Part shown: positions 13,795-64,000 of the stretch, piece after piece
How positions within the stretch are numbered: the first letter of the stretch is position 1
Layout of the letters: the number at the start of each line of letters is the position of its first letter
From: Klebsormidium nitens
Taxonomy: Eukaryota; Plantae; Klebsormidiophyceae
Length of the DNA stretch: 64,000 bases
Assembly: GCA_000708835.1 (NCBI GenBank)
Contig: DF237443.1
Coordinates: 1 to 64,000, forward strand
Direction of reading: 5' to 3'
Notes under the pieces: model-generated
Told to the model about the DNA's origin: nothing
Databases searched by the model: none
Seen by the model: the letters and a program-made list of their open reading frames with translations, nothing else
Translations under genes and position numbers: made by a program

Positions 13795-16700
13795 ATCCTC
13801 CACATACTAATGACTTTTGCAGTTCCTATCTCGCGCTTGAACTTCTTAAACTTCCCCGGTGCTAAAGCCTTGGTCATGATGTCCGCCTTCATGTTCTCCG
13901 TCCTGCAGTGCAAACGCGACCTTCTTGGGTGCAAAGTGATGAATCACGTCAATCTCCTTCGACCGCTGTGAAGGCGATTGGGTGCTTTAGGAGCCGTATC
14001 GCCCCTTGGTTGTTGAGTGGGACTACACCGTTCCAAGGTCCAACTCAAGATCTCCCCCGAGCTTGCGGGATCACAGCGCCTCCTTCACCGCTTGTGCTGC
14101 GCTCATAAGTTCCGCCTCTACCGTCGAAGCCGCCACCGTTGGCTTCAGCCTGCTCGACCAGCTCACCGCCTCCCCGTACACGAGAAGACGTATCCCGTTG
14201 TGGACCGTTCTGTGTTCACGTCACCCGCGCACTCCGCGTCACAATAAGCGATGAGAGTCTTTCCGCTCCCCCAAAGGTCACCCCGTCCTCTGCCGTATCC
14301 GCAAGGTAGCGCACAACTCCAAGCGCCGCCCGCAACTCCGTGCTCCTGCATCGGCCATATAGCGCGCAAGCGCGCCCATTGCCTATGCAATATCGGGCCT
14401 AGTGCACGTGGGTGCTGCATGTAGATCTCCTCCTCTAGCTCCTTATTGAGGAACGCCGTCTTGACGTGCAGCTGATGCAGTTTCAAGTCGCACTATGCGA
14501 CCACCGCCAATAGCGCATGCAAGTCGTGTGCTTGCTCCCTACTGGGCGTCCCGCTTTATCTTGTGAATCCACTTAATGGGAACCGGCTTCACCCCTTCCG
14601 GTTTACAACGAGCTCCCAATTCCCGTTCTGCAACAAAGACCGCATTTCCTCGTCCATTGACTTCCGCCATAGTTCACTCTCTTCTTCCCCCCCGGCTTTC
14701 TGAAAGGTATGCGGTTCTCGGTGCTCCCCGTCCCTTTGGGGTGCTCCCCCNNNNNNNNNNNNNNNNNNNNNNNNNNNNNNNNNNNNNNNNNNNNNNNNNN
14801 NNNNNNNNNNNNNNNNNNNNNNNNNNNNNNNNNNNNNNNNNNNNNNNNNNNNNNNNNNNNNNNNNNNNNNNNNNNNNNNNNNNNNNNNNNNNNNNNNNNN
14901 NNNNNNNNNNNNNNNNNNNNNNNNNNNNNNNNNNNNNNNNNNNNNNNNNNNNNNNNNNNNNNNNNNNNNNNNNNNNNNNNNNNNNNNNNNNNNNNNNNNN
15001 NNNNNNNNNNNNNNNNNNNNNNNNNNNNNNNNNNNNNNNNNNNNNNNNNNNNNNNNNNNNNNNNNNNNNNNNNNNNNNNNNNNNNNNNNNNNNNNNNNNN
15101 NNNNNNNNNNNNNNNNNNNNNNNNNNNNNNNNNNNNNNNNNNNNNNNNNNNNNNNNNNNNNNNNNNNNNNNNNNNNNNNNNNNNNNNNNNNNNNNNNNNN
15201 NNNNNNNNNNNNNNNNNNNNNNNNNNNNNNNNNNNNNNNNNNNNNNNNNNNNNNNNNNNNNNNNNNNNNNNNNNNNNNNNNNNNNNNNNNNNNNNNNNNN
15301 NNNNNNNNNNNNNNNNNNNNNNNNNNNNNNNNNNNNNNNNNNNNNNNNNNNNNNNNNNNNNNNNNNNNNNNNNNNNNNNNNNNNNNNNNNNNNNNNNNNN
15401 NNNNNNNNNNNNNNNNNNNNNNNNNNNNNNNNNNNNNNNNNNNNNNNNNNNNNNNNNNNNNNNNNNNNNNNNNNNNNNNNNNNNNNNNNNNNNNNNNNNN
15501 NNNNNNNNNNNNNNNNNNNNNNNNNNNNNNNNNNNNNNNNNNNNNNNNNNNNNNNNNNNNNNNNNNNNNNNNNNNNNNNNNNNNNNNNNNNNNNNNNNNN
15601 NNNNNNNNNNNNNNNNNNNNNNNNNNNNNNNNNNNNNNNNNNNNNNNNNNNNNNNNNNNNNNNNNNNNNNNNNNNNNNNNNNNNNNNNNNNNNNNNNNCC
15701 CCCGCTTTCGGTTCCGCCGCTAAGTGAGCACGGTACCACTCCTCAGGTGCGCATCTTTCAGACGCGGGATACATCCCGGTCTCCTCCTCAATCTCTTCCG
15801 GCTCTGCGCCCTGTCTTCGCGCACAATTTCAAACTTGCCCTCATTTTGGCCTTTGTGGAAGCGAGCGCGGCGCGGATCGTCGGGCGCGCGCGCGGCCAGG
15901 TCGCCCCGGCGCAGAGATTCAACTTTCAACTTTGGTCCCCCCGTAAACCCCCGTGTGAACCTTTGCGCCGTGACCCTCCGCCTTCTAGAACCGTCCGTGG
16001 GGTCGGAGCCAAGTTCGACAATCCCATTCCCCCCGATGCCCCTCGTCAAAGATAACGTCTCGAAAGATGCTTCACTTCCCGTTACGGTTCCGGAGCAACC
16101 TATACGCCTTCGAGTCCGGCTCGTACCCCACGAACACACATCGCTCGCTCACCGTATCTTCTGTAGCTTACGCCTCCGCTGCTTGAGGACGTGGCGGAAC
16201 GCTCTGGCCCCAAAAAACTTCATACGCCGGACATTCGGCTTCTCACCAAAGAACGCCTCTCAGGGGGTCTTCCCATGTGCGCTCACGGGCGTCCGGTTCC
16301 GGGTGTAGTTGGCCGTCACCACGGCTTCCGCCCACGATTCTTTGGGCACCCCCGAGTCCTCGAGCATCGCCCGAGTCTTGTCCTTATCCCGCTTGAGCCG
16401 TTCCGCCGACACATTTTGCTCGGTATTGTAGGGGGCGGTTTTCTGGTGAACCGTCCCCTTGCTCCCAAAAACGTCTTCAAGGGCCTTATTGACGAGGCTC
16501 CTTGCCCTGATCTGTTCGCACCGACTTGAGCTTCTTCCTCGACTGCAACTCCAACCGGTTTATTGTCCGCTCTGTCACTTTGGCCACCTCACTCTTTTGC
16601 TTCATTCTTGTAGTCGTCCAAGAACGTGGCAAAGTACGGCTTACCCCTACCGAGGCTACCGGCATTGGTCCGCAGACGTCCATGTGGACTAGCTCAAAAG

Positions 16701-31305: not shown

Positions 31306-34300
31306 CTAGCTGGTGTGCCAGTGCTGCAACACCTGGCCCAACTTCTGCTTGTCCAACGGCTTTGCTGCACACGAAAGAATGATAACAGCGTGAACCGGTG
31401 CCATGCCAGGCTACTTTCTGTCCTGGAGCAGACCTTGGGGCGTTGGCGTCGATCGGGTTATATCGAGCCTCGCTCTTTCACGCACCACGTTGGGACACGT
31501 GCTTGGAACAAGTTAAAATAAAGAATATTACATGACCTGGGAAACGAAGCATCTTTAGCAGGCAAAGCCTCGGCTCAGCCGTTGCAAAGTACTCGACAAC
31601 GAAGCTGGATCTCGATACGGACAAGGAGCCGATGAAACTTCAACTCGGGTGCGCAACAAGTTGTTGGTAACCTGCTGCTGTCCAGCTATTTGAGGACGAC
31701 AAGTGCTGCAGAAGATCTTCGGGTCCGCCCAAAGAAAATCCATGTTCCACATCGCAGCAAGGTGCTGTAGCACACAACTATGACCATTGCCAGAGACAAC
31801 AATCGAGGACGGAGAAACTGCAGCAAGCCTGCTGTGATCGGCGATGCAGGGGGCCCGACATGGGCGGGGGTGGGCGCTTACCCAGGTAGTCGTCCATGCC
31901 GGCGGCCATGCACTTCTCGCGCGTGCCCTTCATAACGTCTGCACGCACCAGGGACGAGCGACAGAGTCAGTTCGAGGCCACACGCCGACTATGGCTGCCC
32001 GGCTCAGCTGGGGGCCGCGCGCACCGGGGAGCTTGAGATGATGCCCGCTGCTTTGTCTCCCTTCCATGACCACCGAGCAAGCCAAGCCGGAAGAACCTAC
32101 ACGGCCCCGTGGGTGGGAAGCTGCTCACCGGCTGTGAGGGCGATGATGGGCATCCGCGGCAGCTCCAGCGGGGCGAGACCGAGGCCCGAGGCACCGCCTG
32201 CCGCTGCAGTGGCGACCTTGTTGGCCAGCCGCGTCTTCCATTGCAGCAGCACCCCGCGTGGGCCCCCCGGCGCGCTCCTGCCGCTGGTTTCACAGGTGGA
32301 GGCCTCGGGCGCGGCGAGCTCCGCCAGGCAGCGGGCCTCCACCTCGCGGATGCGCGACGTGGCAGTGTACCTGCAGCAGCGAGGAGACAGCCGCTCACAC
32401 GCACGGCAGGAGAAAGTCGGGCCAAGTACTGGGACTGGCACGGCCGCCTGGAGCGCATCCGGCCGAGCGAAAGAACATCGGTCCATGCAAGCGTTTGGCC
32501 GTGCAGAGGGTTCAAGACTTCGGGCCGGTTTGCAGTATGGACCTTTGAGCCAGCTGCAACCATCGTGGGCACCATGGTGCGCCTTGGGCCGCTTGAGCCC
32601 CATGCGCGCGCTCACCCGTCCATGCCGGGCATCTGCACGTCCATCAGGATGGCGTCGAAGGGCGGCCCCTCCCCCGCGAGGTGCCGCTGGAACGCGTCGA
32701 TGGCGGCCTGCCCGCTATCGGCGCACACGGCGGTGGCGCGCATGCTCTCGAGCATGCGGGAGGCCACCTTGCGGTTGATGGGGCTGTCGTCCACCACCAG
32801 CACGGCCAGCCCCTCCAGCGCGCGCCCCGGCATGCCCGCGTCCAGTGGCGTGCGCGGCGACGCCCCCTCCGCGCTGCTCGCAGGGGCCCCGCGCAGGCTG
32901 GGCTGCGGGGTGGGGTCCCCCGGGGGTGTCACAGGGCCCGGCTCTGCCGCGTCCGCCCCCTGCACGATCCTGAGCAGCGCCAGCCGGAGGGCCTGCTCCC
33001 GCAGCGGCCCTTCCATGACGGCCGCCCACCCCAGGCGCTCCGCTGCGGCGCCGTCCGCGGGCTGCCCCACCACGGCCACCAGTGCGGGCTCCCGCCCCCT
33101 TCCTAGGCCCCGCAACTGGGTGGTCAACACAGGGAGCACATCCAGATCGGGGCCCTCCAGGTGCGCCACCACCACGCTGGGGGGGCCCGGCGGCTCCTCC
33201 GTGTGCTGCAGCCCCGCAAGGGGACCGTCCAAGGTACGCGGAGCGAGCTTCAACAACTCGCCCGACAATCCCCTCCGCACACTGCCCAGGCTGGGACTGC
33301 CGTCGCTGAAGCTGCTACCGGAGCCGCCTGACGTGGAAGCCTCGGAGGAGGATGAGCCGCTGAGAGAGAGGGAGGCGGGGTGGCTGGTGCGTGGGGAAAC
33401 TCGGAGCTGGCGCAGGTAGCTGGCTGCGACCTCAGCACGTACCGGATTGCGGTCGACGACCAGGGCGCGCAGGCCGGCAAATGCTGCCAACAGAGGAGCA
33501 GAGCGGGGTGAAGTGCGGCAGGGGGTGCAGGGCCAGACAGCGACGGCATGAGGGGAAGAAGCGAGAGGCACCGAAGCAGTTGAGCCAGGCGGGTCAGTCG
33601 GCAGGAGACATGCAAACAGCAGGGCGCTAAAGACTTGTCGTGCAGCGGCAGCGAGGCTAGGCCACAACTCACGCGACGGCTTGTCAGGGATTGGCAGCGG
33701 CTCTGCGACGGGGCTGCCCGCTTTGGGCGACGTTGGGGGGTCGAGGCGGACGTGGAACTGGAAGAGGCTGCCCCGCTCCACCTGGCTGGCCACTGCCATG
33801 CCACCGTGCATCAACTTGGCCAACCGGTGCGAGATGTTCAGCCCGATGCCCGTCCCGCCGAAGTTCCTGCACGCACCACAACACCGGCATGTCACCCGCC
33901 AGCATTATTGTGCGGCTCGACACCAGTCGGTTCGTGCACCCGCCGTGCAAGATGAATGTTGGAAAGAACGGGCAAGAAGTGCTGTAAGGGCGGTTGTGAG
34001 CTGATAAGCAGCTTGTGACGCCCGAATCACACTTGCATCCAGCCAGAGACGGCCAGGATTCCGGGTGCAGTATGCGTGCAGGACGAGGGGCCTGGCGCGG
34101 TGGTCACCTGCTGGTGCTGCTGTCCACCTGGCAGAAGGGGCGGAAGAGGCGGTCCCGGGCGTCCGCCGGCATGCCGATGCCCGTGTCCTGCAACAAAGGG
34201 ATGTCAACAACTTGTGTGCAAGGTCAGGGCGGCACAAGGCCAGCCCGTCCAGAAAGAAGCAACGATACATTAGCTTCCGTCAGTCAACGATTGGGTACGT

Positions 34301-53887: not shown

Positions 53888-55066
53888 AACGGGCAGCCTG
53901 GCCTCTGGCCCTCAAGCCTTGTGCATACGCTCTTGGAATTGTGAAACTTTGATGAGGACTACCTCAGTCTGTGCGCTGCGCTTGAAAAGTTTGAAATCAG
54001 AAACCGAGGCCCATGGCCGGCCAATATTGGCATGGGGTGCCCACTGCCCACTGCCGCCTCTTCAACTTCAAGTTGCATTTCGAGCTTTCCCGCAGCCGGA
54101 GTCCACCAGTACTGGCACCACACGAAGGTGGATTCATGAGCAAGCTTGCTAGATACCGTAGCAGCATTGTCGCAGCATTGCCGCAGCCGGCATGCCAAGG
54201 CCCCGGCGGCCGCCTAGCGATCAGGCTGGCGATCGAAGCGGCCGCGGCCTGCGGGCGGCCTGCACAACGGCCTGCAAGTTGGATGCCACCGTTACCGCCT
54301 TTCCAAGCCTGCCGGACGGTGACGTCCAAGGCTGGTATTGCCGCGCCCGTTCAAAAAAAGGTACCTAGATAGGTATTACAGCTTTACTGAACCGCCAGGC
54401 GGTGTCCCTAAAACGCGGACCAGCAAACCGCGGAAAGCTGAAACCGCGGACCGTAACGATGCTCAACACTGAATTTACCGCTTCGGGGGGGTCGAATATA
54501 TTCCCTTTTCTTAGGATATTAGGATTATTTTGAAAGCGGTTTGGGTGTCCGCGGCCGCCACTGCGCAACAGCCGCGGCCCGCGCCGCGCCGATCGACTAG
54601 GGCGCTGGGCGGCGCGCAGGCCCGGCCGGGTGGCGCTTGAATGGCACCGTCTGACTCGGACTGATTGGCCCGGCAGTGCTAGGCGCGCGGCCGGCCGACC
54701 GGCGGCCAGGGCTGCATAGGTCTGCGAGCTGGTCGGATCAAGGCTGGTCAACCTCCTTTCCATATCTTCCACTTCCACCAATGTTCACATAAAGCTCAGA
54801 AATTGTTTCAGTGATGGCAACAGCATTGCAGAGCTAAGGCGACAGATTCTTGTATGCTGCGGCGCCGCTTCTGTGGGCTTCTGTGTTAACATCAGAAGGG
54901 GATCAGAAGCTTCTCTGCTTTTTGTGTAGTTAGATAGAGCTGTGAATGCTGACTGTATGCTGGGAGGATTTTGAACTCCAAAGTCTGCAGAAGATGCAAG
55001 GAGTATCATTTGCCAAAGCTGCTCACAGCCGCTCATATTTGACTTAGCATACCAGACCGCTGCGCA

Positions 55067-58000
55067 ATGGGGTCATCGGCAGCAAAGAATGTGTTCAAGC
55101 CGGTGGCAATAGATAAATCCTTTTTCGAGATGCAAGTGGGCACTGCAGAGCAGCAGAGGGACTGTTTGAACGCGGACTTGGAGAGCCCAATAGAGTATTT
55201 CTTGAGGTGCATTGACGAGCCATGGTCAACAATGGAAGGGTAAGCCAACAAAGTCCATCTGGCAGACCACTTCTGTTTGACGCGGTTGCGAACCTCGGGT
55301 TTTATCTTGCTTTCACGAGGGCTGTAGCCTGCATTGACTGGATCAAATGTGGGGATGTTTTGCATATGCTTGAGAAAAGGTTGATCAGATTGGGTGCCAT
55401 TTGAGAAGGTTTGTTCGTTGTAGCAAGCTGGCTTGGGCGCACGGCCCCCGCTTGTATTTTTCAAACGCCCACAGCATATTCAATCTCAAACAATCCTCGG
55501 ATCACCCATGCATTTTTGGCAATTTCTGGGACCTTAGCAGCCGCTTAGAATGCAAACACACTTGTAGCAGCGCCAAGCATGCAGAGCGTTGGGTTTGTTT
55601 GCGGTCTTAACATGTGCTAGCTCCTACTTGTCACGTGCGCTGCAAGCTAGTTTTGGCCATTACGTCCACGTCTATACAGGCTTTACGTCTTTGCTTCAAG
55701 CAGCTCAGCACATCTCATCTCCTCTCGTTGCAAAAACCTACGTAACTTTTATTTTAGGTGAAGTTATGGTTTCTCAATCTGCTTCGGTACGGGATCTGTG
55801 ATTTGAACTTGGTAATACATCTCTCACCATTCGTGTTTCAACCCCTCTAGGAATTTTAACGTGCGGCTGCAACGATTCAACACCTTCATGGGGGGCAGGT
55901 ATGGAGCCTCTAGCCTTCCACGCAGTGATGAGGACATCTTGAAGCTTAAGGTACGCACCGTCAAGCAATACAGGTATGCAGGAAGCCCGTCTAGATAAGC
56001 TGAATGTGGGGCACTGATGCGGGCTTTCTTCTTCGTAGACAGTACTGTTGTGGACTCTTTTTCCTTTCATGTTTGCTCGGGTGTTTGTTTCTTGCCCTTG
56101 TTTTAAGCACATGCAATTTACCATGACACTCGTGTTTGCCATTAAGTTGTCCTGTACTGTGCCTCCCGATGCCAAATGCACTCTGACGCAAGCTTCAATT
56201 TTTGCCCACTGATCTCAACTGACATATGATGTTGCTTTTGATATGCATGCTAGCTTTTTCATGAACCTAGTTAATAACAACAACTCCTGTGTGTTCTTCC
56301 TCCAGGAACAATACCCCGATCTCGTCACTCTTGCGCAACACGTCTCTGCATCTGATCTCAACTCCGCGGACTTCAAGAGCAGGCTCTGCGATCCCGCCCC
56401 CAATGAGCACTTCTTCATAGTGAAGGGGGCTCTCAGCAAGGCCCAGCAAGCGGGGGCTTTGAGAGCGTTAGTGCCAGAACTGCTTCCCATGACGTACAAG
56501 GAGAGAAAGTCGAAGGGTTATCGGGACCCAATGGAGCCAAGAAACGGAATCAAGTCCCGCTGCGAAGGAGTTCAAGGGGGGCAGTTTGTTTTGTACGATC
56601 TGCCAGAGGAAGCGACGGACTTAGGCGGGTTGGGGGCTCGGGAGCAGCACGACCGGCCAAAGTCGGGAGACACGTTTTTAGAAGTCTTTTCGGAGACCAC
56701 TGACGGAAAAAGAGTGGGGGCGATTGACATCGATGTGGCAGATCCGTTCGATGACCCCAAAACGTCGTTCTGCACGACTGTCGAGCGCATCAAGCGAGAG
56801 CTAGGTACGTGGCAAATTTTTAAGCCTGTTCATACATAGCTTGCACCTGTCTTCGTTGCTATCTCCCTCCGGTTGGCAGTTCAAGTTGACAAGTGCAGTT
56901 CGTTATCCTCAGACGCTTCAAGCCTCTGTTCTCTGACCGACCATTTTCGTGACAAGACGGGCTTACTGTCGGGGGTGCTCGATCTAAACAACGTCCTTCG
57001 GGTAGGGCATCATCAGTGGACCTGCAAGGGTGCAACTAGATTCAAAGCCTTTTCGTACCTTCAAGTGTTGGGCAGCCGTCCCCATCTTCTCCTTCAAGGA
57101 GGCTTTTCACCAGCTTTCCTTGGCCACAGTCTGATGCAAGACACTGTGGCAAGACGCACCTTCCGCTGGCCAACGTCGTCCATTTCACAGGTCTTCGCTC
57201 AGACTTGGAGACCCTTTTCAAATCATCCGACTCAAGGGCTCAAGTTCACGAAAGGCAGATGTGCTCTGTCTTTGCTCAAACAACTGCACTTCTGCTCTGC
57301 AGGGATTGATTGGCCCCTTTCAGATGACTACCTCTCGCATCCGGATATGCCGGCTGGTGTGTCGCCTCGCAAGCCTACCGCCTTTGCAAAGAAGAATCAC
57401 ATTACGTGGGGGCACTTCGAGATGAACGGGTGGCCGGCAGTCAACATCATGTGTGCGGCAAGTTCGGCGCCGCTCGGTCGACTTGCGCAGCTCGCCAGGC
57501 TCAACGCCGCCGCCGACAACGTCGAGGTGCCCTAAAATTCCTGGTCGTTGTTTGATGCGTATCCTTTTCGCCCCCAGCGTTGTTCTCGCACTGTGTTCAA
57601 GATGATTTGTTTGCTCGAAGCTCAAGCCGTTCTCGCCTCGGACACTGAAAGTCTCATCTTACCTCGAATCTACCCACATAAAGTTTTACGACGAAGTGCT
57701 AAAATGGATCAGGTCATCAGCACTTTTTGGCTTCGAGAATGCCTGTCTTCCCCAACTATAGGTAGTCAAACCCCGGCGAGTGTTTTCTCCACAAGTAGAC
57801 AAACCCCGGCGTGTGTTTTCTCAACAACCTCGTGGTTTTAGATCGTCTTCCCTTCGGCCAAAAACGGCGTCAACTTGGCCGAGTAGGTACGGAGTACGCA
57901 GCTGTCTCGTATGATCATACTTTTTTGACTTTCATGTTCATCCCTTTTGCAGCTGAGTCAAATCCTCGACATGGAGGACCGCCGGGTTGCGGAGCAGCAG

Positions 58001-61000
58001 TCGGGTGAAGACGCCTCTAACGGGGCTCAGCTTGCAAGCGGGTCCCGGAGAAGCCTGGCTCGTTGTGGGTCGGATTAGACATCAGCCCGGACAACATGCA
58101 ACGTGCTGAAGTACTATTCGCCCGCGCCTTCGGGGAGTACTTCGAAGAGTGCTCGTCTCCCCAACTTCTTGGGGAGACCGTTCCCCCAGTTGTACGGGCA
58201 GAGATGGACGCCTACTCCCCCATGCAGCGCTTTCTCTACCTCAAGGACGGCTATTGGGCCCTCTCTCCGCAACTTCTATTGGACCACGGGATCAAAATCC
58301 ATCTGATGTAAGCCTCCTTCTCGTTGCTGTTTTTCTCTCGCACCCTTCTCGTTCGAGCTCAATGATAGCGTTACCGTGATGATCAATAGGTGACCATCAA
58401 AGTTCGTCTTATAGCTTTACCAACCAAGGGTATAGGCACACATCTTTCGGCTACAGAAGCTCCAAAAAGTACTCCGCCATGACTCAAGAACGTGCAACAT
58501 TTGATTAGCCTTCAACTACTCTTGTCCAACTTGTCGGCGCTAGACGGTGATCCCAAAGTGATGGCATCACTGCTTCTGTGCTCAAGAATCCAGTGTTAGG
58601 TCGCGGAATTGCATTGAATTTGCCCTGGCCTACATGCCACCGGCTATCTATGCACTTTCCCGCTGTTACGCAGGTGGCAGGAGGCAGGGGACATCGCCCT
58701 GAACGGAGCGCACAAGAATCACTACGTGGTTTCGCCTGGAAAGACGCTGGCAGTGGCTTTCAACGTGGGACATGGAGAAGGTGTTGCGACCTGCACACCT
58801 CCCCACAACCCCGTCGAGCGGACAACCCGGTTCTTCGCCAAGAAAAGTCTGGGCCACTCCTGGACTGAGTACTCGTGGCTACAAGGCTGGAACCCGTGGA
58901 CGTTCCTAGAAGCGGTGAGGCGTCCTAAACACGTGTGCATTGATCCTCAGGAAAGTATGCAAGTAGTCTGCGGGGTTTCAGAAGAAGAATTGTTTCCTTT
59001 GAAAAGTCTGGATCGTCTGGTGGAATTTCAAGCGTTCATGTCAATCTCGAACATTTGTCCACAAGTGCCATCGCAAGGGGCAACTGAATCGATGTACGAT
59101 ACTTCGAAACAAATGCACATCGGCTGCTTTGCGCGTGGAACTCTGCTGGAAAAGAAACGCACACACAGCTTTTTTGCGGCAGGCAAAGAGAGCTAAGGTG
59201 TGCCTCACTAGTCCTCATGGTGTTGCCGCCCCGTCGACCTCAAAAGTCAAACCCTGAAAGCGGTCATGGGGACTTGACTGCGCAGGTGTTCAACAACAGC
59301 TTCACCGACAATCTGTCCAGCCCCGCAGTGGCGGCCACCTACCACCACGGGTTGCTGCAGTACGCACGGGGGGAGATCGGCCTAGCGGATCAGCCTTGGT
59401 AAACGCTTCTACTCGTTTTTCTGACTTCAGCCGAACCCAGGCCATGTGCAGAAAGGCGAGCAATACGATCAAAGCCTTAACAATTCGTTTGCTTTTGGGC
59501 GGGTCAAACGGATCAAGGGACTGTGCAGAATCTGATTCGCGGTCGGGTCGAACGGATCAAGGGACTGTGCAGAAATCGAGTGGCGGGCGGTCAAACGGAT
59601 CTAGGGACTGTGCAGAAATTGACTTGCGGGTGGGTCGAACGGAGTAAAGGCCAGCAGAAACTGACTCGCGTGAAGCATTAGCTGTGCTTTCCGTTTGTCC
59701 TCCTGGCTTGGTGAAGATTGATTTACGCATACTTGATGAGGACGTGGCATACCCTCGCCAAAACCAAACACGGACGGCGACAGTTTTCTGGAATCTACTA
59801 CTTCACTTCTATCTACTTGAAATGAATCTCTCTGAACACCCCTGCTATCGTACCTGAATACCCCGTTCATTCGCTAGGTTTATCGACATTCTAAAGCGCT
59901 TGGAAAAGCGTTCAGAAGTCGCTGCTTCCAAGGAGGTGACGGTTGTGGCTTCCGGATCCGTTGCTTCTCCAGGAACCGAGTTGCCTTCCACCAGGTAATC
60001 CATCACGGTCTATACAAGTTTGGGACAGAGTTTCTGAGTTTAACCATCTCTACATTTGGTGCCCTTGATCTCTAAGGATGTCTCAAGGATTGACGTTGCA
60101 CGACCCACGTTATATTGGTCAATCACGTGTGCGTCGCGGTACGCTATGCGGCAACTAGACACAAGTGCTTCGCACAGATTTGGTTGCTTTAATAGCAAGC
60201 GTCACAGGCTGTTACCAACCAGAAGCGCCTGGTTGAAATAGGGAGCTCTTAAAAAGGGCTTGCTAAAAGCCCCCCGGCCTGTCGCCTACTACTGCTTGAG
60301 TCACCTTGCCCTAACGCCCGCCTTTGGGGCATATCCCCGGAGCTTCGGAAAAAAGGCTTAAAACAGGCGCCGTTCACTAGCACTGGAGCCGTTTGCGCCC
60401 TGCCAAAACGGGCGCTGGCAGCGGGGGACAGCTCGGAGCATCGGATTAAGAGGCTCGACAAAGCCCCTGCACGATAGCTCATACGTCCGGTTGCCCGATC
60501 TTTTTGGTAAGGACACAAAGCTTTAACTTGCTTTCGTTTTTACTGCAGTGAAACGAACAACTGCGTGCGCGGCGCTTCGGAAGGAATGCTGCAGATGGAC
60601 AAGTCCGGGCCAGCCGTCGACGAACCTGCCGCCGCGCAGACCACCGCCAAGTAAGTCCGGATTCATTTACAAGCAGTCACAACTATATCAACGGGAAAGT
60701 CGACAGAGGCTGTGCACAAACTGATTGATAGCGCTCGCATCTTAGAGTTCATGCAGACAGGTTAAACCCGATCGCTTGGTATCACGGCCTGTTCGTCATC
60801 ATACGCGCTCCCTGAATCTGGTCGCCATGAGAAGCATCGTTTCATTTGTTGCTGGAGATTATTTAACGTCGCCGTCCAATAGAGAAGAGCCGCGGCCATG
60901 TACATGTATAACGACAAATTGCCTTTGCAGACCCCCCCCACAAGCATCCGGACCCGCGACAGCAACACGCCGCGGCAACATCATGCCGCTCGTGGACGAA

Positions 61001-63663
61001 CGGCCGGCCAACACGTGAGTAAACCGGACAACTTCCCTGAAGATAAACTGTTCTGAAGGTCAATGAAGGGTGACCTTACAAATCGTTTCGAACCTCGTTT
61101 TCTGCTCCATCAAGATGCAATCTGGGTGTGATCGACCGGGTTGCGCCCGCTTCCTTCAGAACAATGCTGAGTATTGAGTAAGTTCCAACCACCTTCGGGT
61201 CTTTATTTCTTACATATGGAGGGCGGTGACGATGGAGTATTTGTTCAAATATGCGGTGCAATCCATCTGAAGTTCTCCCGCCTTGGAACAGTGCTCAGCA
61301 AGGACTATGCCTTAATTGATTGAGAGGAAGCTGTTTTCGAACCGTTTGCAAAGCTTCGCGGTCATAGATTACTAAACAACAGTTTTCTTATGCAGTTCCC
61401 TCCTCAAACCAGCCTGCTTGGCGTCGCGTTCACGCCCGGGCAGCACTAAGCTTCTCGTCGATGTACGGGCGGCCAACAGGTTCGTTACCTAGCAACAAAG
61501 TTGCATTGTGCAACGAAAAATGACCTTTCAAATCCTGCCACGCCCTCCTGTCCGCTCGAAATGGTGGCGGCAGCCAGTTGGAGATCGATAACTGCACTTT
61601 AAGGGTTTTAGAGTTTGCATACGTTTAATTGTGCCCTAGCTTCCGGTGTGACATGAATTTCGTCGGGAATTTTGACTGAGGGGAAAGCGGAGCTCGTTTT
61701 GTCACCCGTCTCAGGCTCAAGTGGGCACCGTGCGGAAAAGCTCGTCCGGATAACCGGAACGGTCACTTGAGCGAATGACAACCAAGCAATTCGGAAGCAG
61801 GCACAAAGCTCAAGTTGCCATCTCGTTCTTGGTGCAGTGGAACAAACAACTTGATGGTGGGCGCTGCAGAAGGAACGTTGCAAGCAAACACGTCCGGGAC
61901 AGCCGTCAACCAACCTGCTGCTGCGCATACAACGGCCAAGTGAGTATGATTCATTCACAAGCACACGTAGCTCATGCAAACAATTACTGCCCAGGGCGGC
62001 TTGCGGTGCGCCGTCACAATAGGGCCCCCTTTCGAACATCGTTGACCAGTCAAAGCGCTCTGGATCTATGTACGCCTCCCCAAAGCGCCTGGCCCATGAG
62101 GTTGCTAATTGAAGAGTAGACGATAGAGTAGACGATAACGCTCGCTTTTTCGAGATCAAGGCTGGGCATGCATTCAATGTCAGCTACCTTAGGGCCAAAT
62201 ATTCAGTATCCGTCTTTCACATGGGAAGACCTGATCGGTCTTTTTTCGTGAGCATACGCTCCTGTAACTCTTTCTAGCAAGTCGCACTATTTCGCCTAGA
62301 AAGCAGTATTCCATTCTTCTGCTGAAAAGGTACCATCTTCGTCTCGAAACTAAAGCGTCAAGGTGGGACACAAGTACGACGGTTGTTCTGTGCAGTGACC
62401 TTTTGGAAGCAGCCGGCCCGTTGACACGAGCACGGCGCCGCAACAACCCCATGCCGCTGGTGAATGAGCCGCCGACCGACAGGTTTGTGAACTCCCCTTC
62501 CCAACACAGTTGGACAGCTACGAAAGTTTGACATGGACGTCATCAAAGGGTGACTTTTGTTAATCTTGCAGGCGGTTTCCTTCAGTCGGGTGGCGGCCTG
62601 TGTGAGACCGATAGCGCCATCTTCGTTAAGATCGAATAAACTTGATTCAATGAGAAATTTCAACACATGAAGTGACCTGAATACGGCTTCCTATTTTCCA
62701 CTTACGACCAAGTTGCCAGGTTTGGAAGGCGATCTTTCTCGGTCTCTTCCGTTCTCTAAGAAGGCAACTGACTTTCGTCTGTTTCGCTTACAGTGCTACG
62801 GTTGTTCTGGCGGGAGAAGGGGCACGGGAGGACGCATCCGGGCCTGCTGTCGACCTTGCCGCCAAGAAGCCGTCCGTTGCGAAAGCGGCTACTAAGTGAG
62901 CTTGCTCCGAAGCACTGCAGTGCAAGCTAGCGGGACTCAAACCGCATAACGCAAGGTCGATTCTTGAAACGGCTCCCTCGAACTTCCCATGCAGCTTAGA
63001 TGCTTAGACTTTTTCTGTCATGCCCATTATGCAGATCTGAAACAAGGCAGCCCACGCACATCCGGTTCGACATGGACTCGGAGGATGAACGAGCAGAGGA
63101 GACCGGGTACGCCGCTCGTCAACGCTCTTTGCCTCGTTGGGCCTCGTTGGCATCCCTTTTTGTGTCCTAAAAGCTTTGTAACTTGCGGTACGTTCACAAT
63201 ATCTTGCTTGTAGTGTTGTTCGTCTCGCTTTTTAACGAGTCGGAACGCTTGACCGCCTTCTCATGGGCCGCGTGTTGAAAGGGCAATGAGAAAAAGTCCT
63301 GGGAGCCCATCTGCCTTGAGAGCCCTGCAATTCGGGCGCGCTGAAAGTTCTTGACAGCTCGGCCCTCCAAAAAAACGGAGCCGGACGAACGAGCACCACG
63401 GACTGTCGGCTGCCTGCCCCGGCTTGTTAAAATGGCGCGCCCATTGCGGGCGTTGTTGCTTTGTTCTGGATCACCGTCTTCCGCAATATGTCCATCAATT
63501 CATATCTAAGGAAGCAACACATTTGCTCGTCCATTTGTTTTTGCTTCAGTGGCACGTATGATTTGGCGGCCAGAGCAACGGAAGTAGTAGTGCGGGAGGA
63601 CACCTCGGGGCCCAGCGTTGATCCCGCTGCCAACCAGCCAGCCGCTGCCAAATCGACCTCCAC
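55067..63663 (+). CDS. Multi-exon JmjC-domain protein (KDM6-like motifs) with repetitive exon-cassette tail; continues to or past the window end
   Basis: Phase-consistent exons 55067-55239, 55851-55950, 56306-56804, 57303-~57461, 58031-~58313, 58674-~59066, ~59286-59398, then symmetric exons 59878-63663. JmjC ligands H-x-E (WGHFEMNG) and distal H (KNHYV) are intact. Confidence 0.75.
59497..59650. repeat. Intronic minisatellite, ~44-bp period, ~3.4 copies
   Basis: Core GGGTC(A/G)AACGGATC(A/T)AGGGACTGTGCAGAA at ~59501, 59545, 59588 and a partial copy at 59632. Confidence 0.9.
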
Positions 63664-64000
63664 GTGAGCTCGCGTTTGTTTCGGAATCGCTGCAGCGCAA
63701 CTCCAGCACGACGATTTTGAGGCTCCTTTTAAGGCTCTATCTTAGTGCTTGGGTTCTACTGTCATGCTCTTTTTGCAATGACGACCAAGGTACCATCTGC
63801 ATGTCCGTTTTACCACGGGAATCCGAAGATGAAGCAACAGAGGATACACTGTACGCCGCCGATTGGCAGGCAGCCCTTACACGACTTCATGGAGAATAGG
63901 TCTTGACAAAGCTAATGCTGCAAATGGAGGACCATAGGTCATTACAAAGCAGCTGCTGTTGTTGGGTGGAAGCTGGTCTTAGCACAACTCACTGAGCCGT

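Follow-up and report, generated by a model that had tools for sequence, protein, structure and literature searches.

A transcribed, frame-broken gene of Klebsormidium nitens with a putative, highly diverged JmjC-like core

Gene structure, transcripts and the frame break

The 64,000-nucleotide stretch of Klebsormidium nitens DNA analysed here (the window) comprises bases 1–64,000 of the 71,195-base contig DF237443.1, assembly GCA_000708835.1. It carries on its forward strand, from position 55067 onwards, a multi-exon gene that a first-pass annotation of the sequence had read as an intact KDM6 (UTX/JMJD3)-like JmjC dioxygenase. The gene is real, spliced and transcribed, and the two halves of its putative catalytic domain lie in different reading frames of the main mRNA. 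Taking all lines of evidence together, we regard the locus as a diverged member of the JmjC family that has been split by a frameshift in exon 5 and recently inactivated yet is still transcribed, and we put the probability of this reading at roughly 0.6.

In GenBank the locus is described as two genes, the first coding for 373 and the second for 667 amino acids. The first product, KFL_004940120 [Klebsormidium nitens] (hypothetical protein, P0002, 373 amino acids, encoded on DF237443.1, GCA_000708835.1), is the identical annotated match to the exon 4 frame, and its ATG at 55067 agrees with the start chosen in the first-pass annotation. The N-terminus of P0002 reads MGSSAAK, which we take to resemble an N-myristoylation signal. 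The 667-amino-acid model begins at an internal Met at 58204. To establish splicing, transcript-like contigs from four runs, each of a different study, were matched to the genome without mismatch or gap, which gave eight GT..AG joints, namely 55239/55851, 55950/56306, 56804/57303, 57526/57953, 58307/58674, 58914/59286, 59398/59878 and 59994/60549. Every intron of the gene is backed by these contigs, including 58307/58674, which creates the second motif. The resulting features, all on the + strand, are the following.

54800 (or earlier)–55239, +: exon 1, 5' untranslated region followed by the ATG at 55067 (transcript contigs and start of P0002)
55851–55950, +: exon 2, both joints seen in four runs
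56306–56804, +: exon 3, 166 codons, the best conserved part (transcript contigs)
57303–57526, +: exon 4, with K-x4-T-x2-H-F-E-x7-N (His 57413–15, Glu 57419–21), proposed Fe(II) ligands 1 and 2 and 2-oxoglutarate pocket
57953–58307, +: exon 5 (joint 57526/57953), 5' part LSQILDMEDRR... in the frame of exons 1–4, 3' part EKPGSLWVGLD...DHGIKIHLM in the -1 frame
58021–58048, +: zone holding the frameshift, from 58021, where the downstream frame opens, to the point where similarity to the paralog resumes (~58048)
58076–58078, +: TAG closing the upstream frame (annotated 373-amino-acid protein)
58674–58914, +: exon 6, with WQEAGD-x9-H-x5-G-x7-NVG (His 58720–22), proposed to supply the third Fe(II) ligand and the final strands of the JmjC core
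59286–59398, +: exon 7 (joints 58914/59286 and 59398/59878)
59878–59994, 60549–60650 and 60931–61014, +: further exons continuing the open frame into a low-complexity Ala/Pro/Ser-rich tail, with more beyond (transcript contigs; the end of the last one inferred from its GT donor)

The transcript begins at least ~105 nucleotides upstream of 54800, and the 5' untranslated region (window 54781–55066) contains six upstream ATGs with short frames. Both peptides on which the first-pass annotation relied are encoded as stated: translation places HITWGHFEMNGWPAVNIM in exon 4 (57303–57526), while LLDHGIKIHLM/WQEAGD...AFNVG spans the exon 5/exon 6 junction 58307/58674, and the His at 58720–22 is the one that aligns to the metal-binding His of UTX and KDM4A. 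The proposed gene end at 59400 did not hold up, as the TAA at 59400–02 belongs to GTAAAC, the donor of the following intron, and the transcript extends more than 4 kb further; after 59400 the open frame passes through at least four more exons into the low-complexity tail. An in-frame model of 540 amino acids (acceptor 58039, end at the TAA 59400) was rejected since the contigs use 57953 and splice the TAA out, and an alternative exon 4 donor at 57461 runs into stops. Two introns contain tandem repeats, a 33-bp duplication between exons 4 and 5 (window 57762–57827, 2 copies, 90%) and a 44-bp array between exons 7 and 8 (window 59497–59643, 3.4 copies, 84% matches) that contains GGATCAAGGGACTGTGCAGAA.

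Exon 4 ends at a codon boundary and exon 5 is entered from 57953 in the same frame, which leads to the TAG at 58076–78. The second-His half and all downstream sequence are read in the -1 frame, and this frame opens no earlier than 58021. Of the first-pass claim that the gene provides all three Fe(II) ligands, the residues themselves and their order stand, with H-F-E at 57413–21 and His at 58720–22, but they belong to different frames with a stop between them. The two motif-bearing exons had been expected to be joined in frame; in the main mRNA the stop 58076–78 lies between them. This out-of-frame transcript join refutes the strong claim of an intact KDM6/UTX-type demethylase gene at the locus.

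The position of the break could be narrowed down with a second K. nitens protein, P0003, encoded on DF237572.1. In a tblastn comparison with the locus mRNA its residues 1–182 follow the upstream frame to ~57994 and its residues 199–286 follow the downstream frame from ~58048. From this frame switch, and with a downstream frame that opens at 58021, we place the frameshift at 58021–58048. The DNA alignment to the paralog contains a +2 indel (a 2-base surplus) at ~58044–48, within a poorly conserved stretch. In the P0003 gene the equivalent of exon 5 is one uninterrupted frame from VLQILRAEDKR through GALWWAPDL to DHGIKIHIM (L003 11379–11768). As the paralog thus keeps a single frame across this exon, it is the copy in the window that is frameshifted, and the break is not ancestral. 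No slippery heptamer of the type X_XXY_YYZ was found on direct reading of the overlap 58021–58075, and programmed -1 frameshifting was therefore ruled unlikely.

Putative JmjC-like core and its relatives

When the 67-amino-acid peptide across the exon 5/6 junction was compared with 24,736 Pfam families, the JmjC family PF02373 was its sole match (E=0.0063), with an alignment to the last 47 profile positions and thus in the correct C-terminal register. In addition, four reference blocks of 48–51 amino acids from UTX and KDM4A, each verified residue by residue against the PDB, were slid without gaps over ~130,000 six-frame window positions and the mRNA. The UTX motifs quoted in the first-pass annotation proved to be genuine in the same PDB sequences. 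With the second block (48 amino acids) as query the locus site was the best of the ~130,000 for both proteins, scoring 40 against 9 for the next site with UTX and 47 against 14 with KDM4A, and by this measure the second motif block is clearly above chance. Among the sequences of solved structures, which include UTX and JMJD3, no JmjC chain was found at E<=10, either by phmmer with each exon and the junction peptide or by hmmsearch with a profile of the family.

The first half can be judged from the three K. nitens paralogs, in which T, K, H, T, H, G, A and N are invariant and the metal position is occupied by E, E and D. Their shared pattern is [Y/F]-x-K-x4/5-T-x2-H-x-[E/D]-x7-N, and the E/D position matches E1392, the metal ligand of JMJD3. 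The residues Y1379, K1381, T1387, H1390 and N1400 of JMJD3 line the 2-oxoglutarate pocket (PMC11417268), and the offsets of the paralog pattern match these positions. With roles carried over from JMJD3, the 2-oxoglutarate-binding residues would be the T at -3, the K at -8/-9 and the N at +10, all of them invariant in the three paralogs. These residues support the presence of a JmjC-like catalytic core.

An exhaustive search with the 373-amino-acid protein against 1.84 billion representatives returned only three relatives, all of them fragments. P0001 is a metagenome fragment 70% identical to exon 3 (67% in a local alignment), P0003 is the K. nitens paralog on DF237572.1 (39%), which stays in frame through exon 5 and ends at the contig end before exon 6, and P0004 is a K. 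nitens fragment on DF237960.1 that is fused to a copia gag. Both K. nitens paralogs have the exon structure and the conserved pocket residues of the copy described here, at 39–46% identity. The copy on DF237960.1 is disrupted (L004 10001–12085), its annotated protein joining part of exon 3 to a copia-type gag (Pfam Retrotran_gag_2); nearby, a frame (L004 10443–10532) still encodes ...KEGGHLTHSHFDMHGHVAANL, with Asp at the metal position. The paralog count that the first-pass annotation had asked for comes to three K. nitens loci in all and one metagenome fragment. In word searches, exon 3 led to one metagenome fragment and the exon 4 frame only to its annotated protein, and a scan of JGI metagenomes with exon 6 and exon 3 gave no match. 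The family thus looks like an orphan restricted to Klebsormidium.

Between exon 3 and P0001 the ratio of non-synonymous to synonymous substitution rates (dN/dS) is ~0.12. From this strong constraint on exon 3 it follows that the gene was functional for most of its history and that the break is probably recent.

Could the His/Glu/His motifs have arisen by chance in a fast-evolving orphan gene, possibly derived from a transposon, that has no kinship with JmjC proteins at all? The lack of a Pfam match at the curated threshold, of relatives in the PDB or the sequence library and of a confident fold would suit such an origin, as would an H-x-E block that does not rise above background and a paralog wrecked by a copia insertion. 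On the other hand, JmjC is the one family among 24,736 that the junction peptide finds (E=0.006), and in the correct register; the second block comes out on top by a wide margin with two independent and verified JmjC queries; and the paralog-invariant residues are those of the JmjC cofactor pocket, including the classic E/D exchange. We therefore hold a chance resemblance to be distinctly unlikely. The evidence for JmjC is real but thin; a JmjC-like nature is plausible, and descent from a JmjC protein seems very probable to us from these comparisons.

Comparison with KDM6, KDM4/KDM5 and KDM3 proteins

The gap-free scores of the individual segments against the two reference proteins were as follows.

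H-x-E block, locus copy: UTX 21, KDM4A -1
H-x-E block, paralog: UTX 17, KDM4A -1
24 residues preceding the second His: UTX 16, KDM4A 42
24 residues starting just ahead of the second His and ending in NVG: UTX 24, KDM4A 5

The statement of the first-pass annotation that KDM4/5 fits less well is thus borne out for the H-x-E block and for the part after the second His, but not for the block before the second His, which is KDM4A-like. Its assignment to KDM6 is not supported, as no sequence or profile search gave a KDM6 match and the second block combines features of KDM4 with others of KDM6. Two of its negative observations are correct: only two Cys occur in the ~200 residues after NVG, which are followed by the low-complexity Ala/Pro/Ser tail, so that the four-Cys zinc domain is missing, and no tetratricopeptide repeats (TPRs) are present in the N-terminal 373 amino acids (no Pfam family at E<=10), the long downstream part having been scanned only partly.

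In comparison with KDM6 proteins (UTX/KDM6A, UTY, JMJD3/KDM6B; PDB 3AVR, 4ASK) the motif Y-x-K-x5-T-x2-H-x-E-x7-N agrees with the family consensus position for position, and H-[YW]-V-x3-G-x5-A-[FW]-N-V-G after the second His can be aligned without gaps. Lys at -9 is a KDM6 trait. Unlike in KDM6 proteins, a large insertion follows the first half, the distance from His to His being ~170 residues compared to ~80 in UTX. The strand preceding the second His does not resemble KDM6, there is no significant sequence or profile match, Asn is absent from position +10 behind the second His, and Ala is the counterpart of JMJD3 N1480. The locus also lacks the helical and four-Cys zinc domain as well as a TPR match in its N-terminal part, and its domain is split by the frameshift.

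The likeness to KDM4/KDM5 proteins (KDM4A, plant JMJ13/JMJ14; PDB 2OQ6, 6IP0) is found in [IL]-S-P-x2-L-x3-G-I-x6-Q-E-A-G-[ED] before the second His, in a distance of 14 from Q to His that is the same in KDM4A, and in the gap-free score of 47 over 48 residues as against 40 for UTX. In contrast to KDM4/KDM5, the family has T and not F at -3 and its conserved Lys before and not after H-x-E, the first block scores -1, and neither a JmjN domain (no Pfam match of the 373-amino-acid protein) nor a C-terminal zinc finger is present.

In KDM3/JHDM2 proteins (JMJD1A/B, plant IBM1/JMJ25), too, the H-x-D strand is separated by a long insertion from a strand of the type '...EKPGALW...'. EKPGSLW in this copy and GALWW in the paralog may resemble this KDM3 strand. 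Unlike the family described here, KDM3 uses H-x-D and carries an N-terminal zinc finger, and no KDM3 structure was matched in the sequence or profile searches of solved structures. According to PMC9029850, the distances between catalytic residues are larger in plant KDM3, a group whose earliest members occur in charophytes.

An intact dioxygenase of the KDM6 (UTX/JMJD3) clade, retained or horizontally acquired and demethylating H3K27me3 or a related mark, would account for the preference of the H-x-E block for UTX in both the locus and the paralog, for three invariant residues (K at -9, T at -3, N at +10) that fit a KDM6-type 2-oxoglutarate pocket, and for the UTX-like 24 residues that end in NVG. 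It is difficult to reconcile with two halves that do not share a frame in the main mRNA, with searches that return no KDM6 protein, with the KDM4-like residues before the second His, with the long His-to-His distance, with only two Cys in 200 post-core residues, with a 373-amino-acid part devoid of TPR or any other Pfam domain, and with Ala in place of N1480. We consider it very improbable. The evidence for KDM6 is mixed and weak, and KDM6 membership is not supported. The absence of the KDM6 clade, which the first-pass annotation had noted for land plants, is in agreement with the literature, where plants are described as lacking KDM6 (PMC6428840, PMC2579438).

Proposed history of the locus and its surroundings

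The locus may be best explained by a small gene family, so far seen in Klebsormidium only, that would have descended from a JmjC-type Fe(II)/2-oxoglutarate oxygenase and diverged past routine detection. The ancestral single polypeptide would have combined the first-half pocket ([Y/F]-x-K...T-x2-H-x-E/D...N), an insertion of ~60–70 residues and a second half with SP-x2-L...GI...Q-x2-GD-x9-H...NVG. We infer that its product folded into a double-stranded beta-helix, bound iron via His, Glu and His and oxidised a substrate, possibly methyl-lysine. At the locus in the window the frameshift in exon 5 (58021–58048) parts the two halves, so that the well-expressed spliced mRNA encodes a 373-amino-acid protein ending at 58076, with the second half heading the long downstream -1 frame. 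Most likely the locus is a recently inactivated, still transcribed gene and not a working demethylase.

Several results weigh against this interpretation. The JmjC match of the junction peptide reaches 17.4 bits compared to a curated cut-off of 24 and covers only profile positions 68–114 of 114; no Pfam match at E<=10 was obtained for single exons, the 373-amino-acid protein, the paralogs or short stretches surrounding H-x-E; and the score of 21 for the H-x-E block against UTX is not above background, as random window sites reach 24–30. An AlphaFold2 model of a paralog had a mean confidence (pLDDT, predicted local distance difference test) of 40.6, too poor for a fold search, and in the ESM Atlas the models were poor and no informative neighbour was found. 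A word search with the exon 6 frame gave no match, exon 6 being known from one sequence alone. The contigs used for splicing are Logan contigs, which lose rare isoforms, so that a minor in-frame isoform may go unseen. Finally, the AGs at 58037–38 and 58049–50 would restore the frame if they were used as acceptors (exon starts 58039 and 58051), and the high transcript depth together with the strong past constraint leaves room for a function of the 373-amino-acid product alone.

These last points lead to the question of whether the gene still works, either with a full-length JmjC protein made through a minor isoform or recoding, or with two halves made separately as a split enzyme. Stable, abundant and fully spliced transcripts in seven studies, the strong past purifying selection on exon 3 and the two frame-restoring acceptors would be expected in that case, as would a downstream frame that is open for at least 314 codons through six further exons and has an ATG at 58096, 18 nucleotides past the upstream stop. 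Yet 57953 is used in all four assembled transcripts, the candidate acceptors lack the YYNCAG/G context of the other introns, and the paralog conserves the segment to be skipped as coding sequence (LQIL..ED.R.A), so that skipping was not the ancestral solution. Recoding meets with the lack of a slippery site, and in eukaryotes reinitiation works poorly once a frame of 373 codons has been translated. A functional gene of this kind is therefore unlikely in our view.

Downstream of the JmjC-like part the window contains, at 59878–63664, short exons and exon-like frames with a repeated low-complexity SGPAVD-x-AA-x-TAK, of which only the first three to four are confirmed by RNA; these segments appear to be a linker of duplicated cassettes. 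The 667-amino-acid gene ends at a stop in another frame, 47 nucleotides before the Met of a 655-amino-acid gene, and this boundary points to another frame break in what may formerly have been a longer gene. Just upstream of that Met, an open frame at 67111–67680 in window numbering (L002 22045–22614) encodes the OTU-protease-like motif DGLCIFKAV; it had no Pfam match at E<=0.1. The transcript contigs extend ~4 kb past 60650, which is enough for the 667-amino-acid gene and the 655-amino-acid gene beginning 47 bases later, although a contig that covers several genes is no proof of a single transcript.

One may also ask whether a transposon carries the locus as the front part of a single giant gene (JmjC, repeat linker, OTU-like protease, TPR, Mutator-like transposase) that would serve the element as its own chromatin eraser. 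The reach of the contigs across the next two annotated genes, the OTU-like motif at window 67300 and the family members being few, scattered and decayed, as is typical of mobile cargo, are in line with this. Against it stand the missing Pfam matches of the OTU-like and other downstream frames (E<=0.1), the absence of terminal inverted repeats bounding the 23 kb examined at the locus, at least two frame breaks between the three annotated genes, and a protein identity of ~39% between the paralogs, so that these are not recent copies. We regard it as about as unlikely as a functional gene. A more far-reaching combination would be a private, fast-evolving Klebsormidium branch of JmjC proteins with a KDM6-type pocket, in a lineage held to be without KDM6, whose enzyme at this locus arises from two frames of one mRNA (by recoding or as two assembling chains), possibly within a giant mobile-element gene with a protease-like module; this is a long shot.

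The JmjC-like gene has neighbours of ordinary nuclear type, which encode a TFIIS-type factor, an FHA protein and a CRE1-type-receiver hybrid histidine kinase, and transcripts of the locus are present in seven studies; judged from both, there is no sign that the contig is contamination. Elsewhere in the window, 32612–33895 (- strand) encodes HATPase_c, a CRE1-type first receiver and Response_reg as part of a cytokinin-receptor-like hybrid histidine kinase, the open frame 652–1593 encodes a retroelement gag-type CCHC zinc knuckle, and 14001–16000 has a GC content of 0.31 compared to ~0.5 around it, with long overlapping frames on both strands, the longest of which has no Pfam match.

In summary, an intact KDM6-type H3K27 demethylase in a streptophyte alga would, if true, overturn the accepted absence of this clade from the plant lineage (PMC6428840, PMC2579438), and the evidence presented here does not support it. 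As a caution for similar cases, motif matches that span splice junctions need an RNA-based check of the reading frame. What stands is an orphan, highly divergent JmjC-like family that has been overlooked by standard domain scans and whose putative active site is a mosaic of KDM4- and KDM6-like features, with a copy at this locus that is broken yet strongly transcribed.

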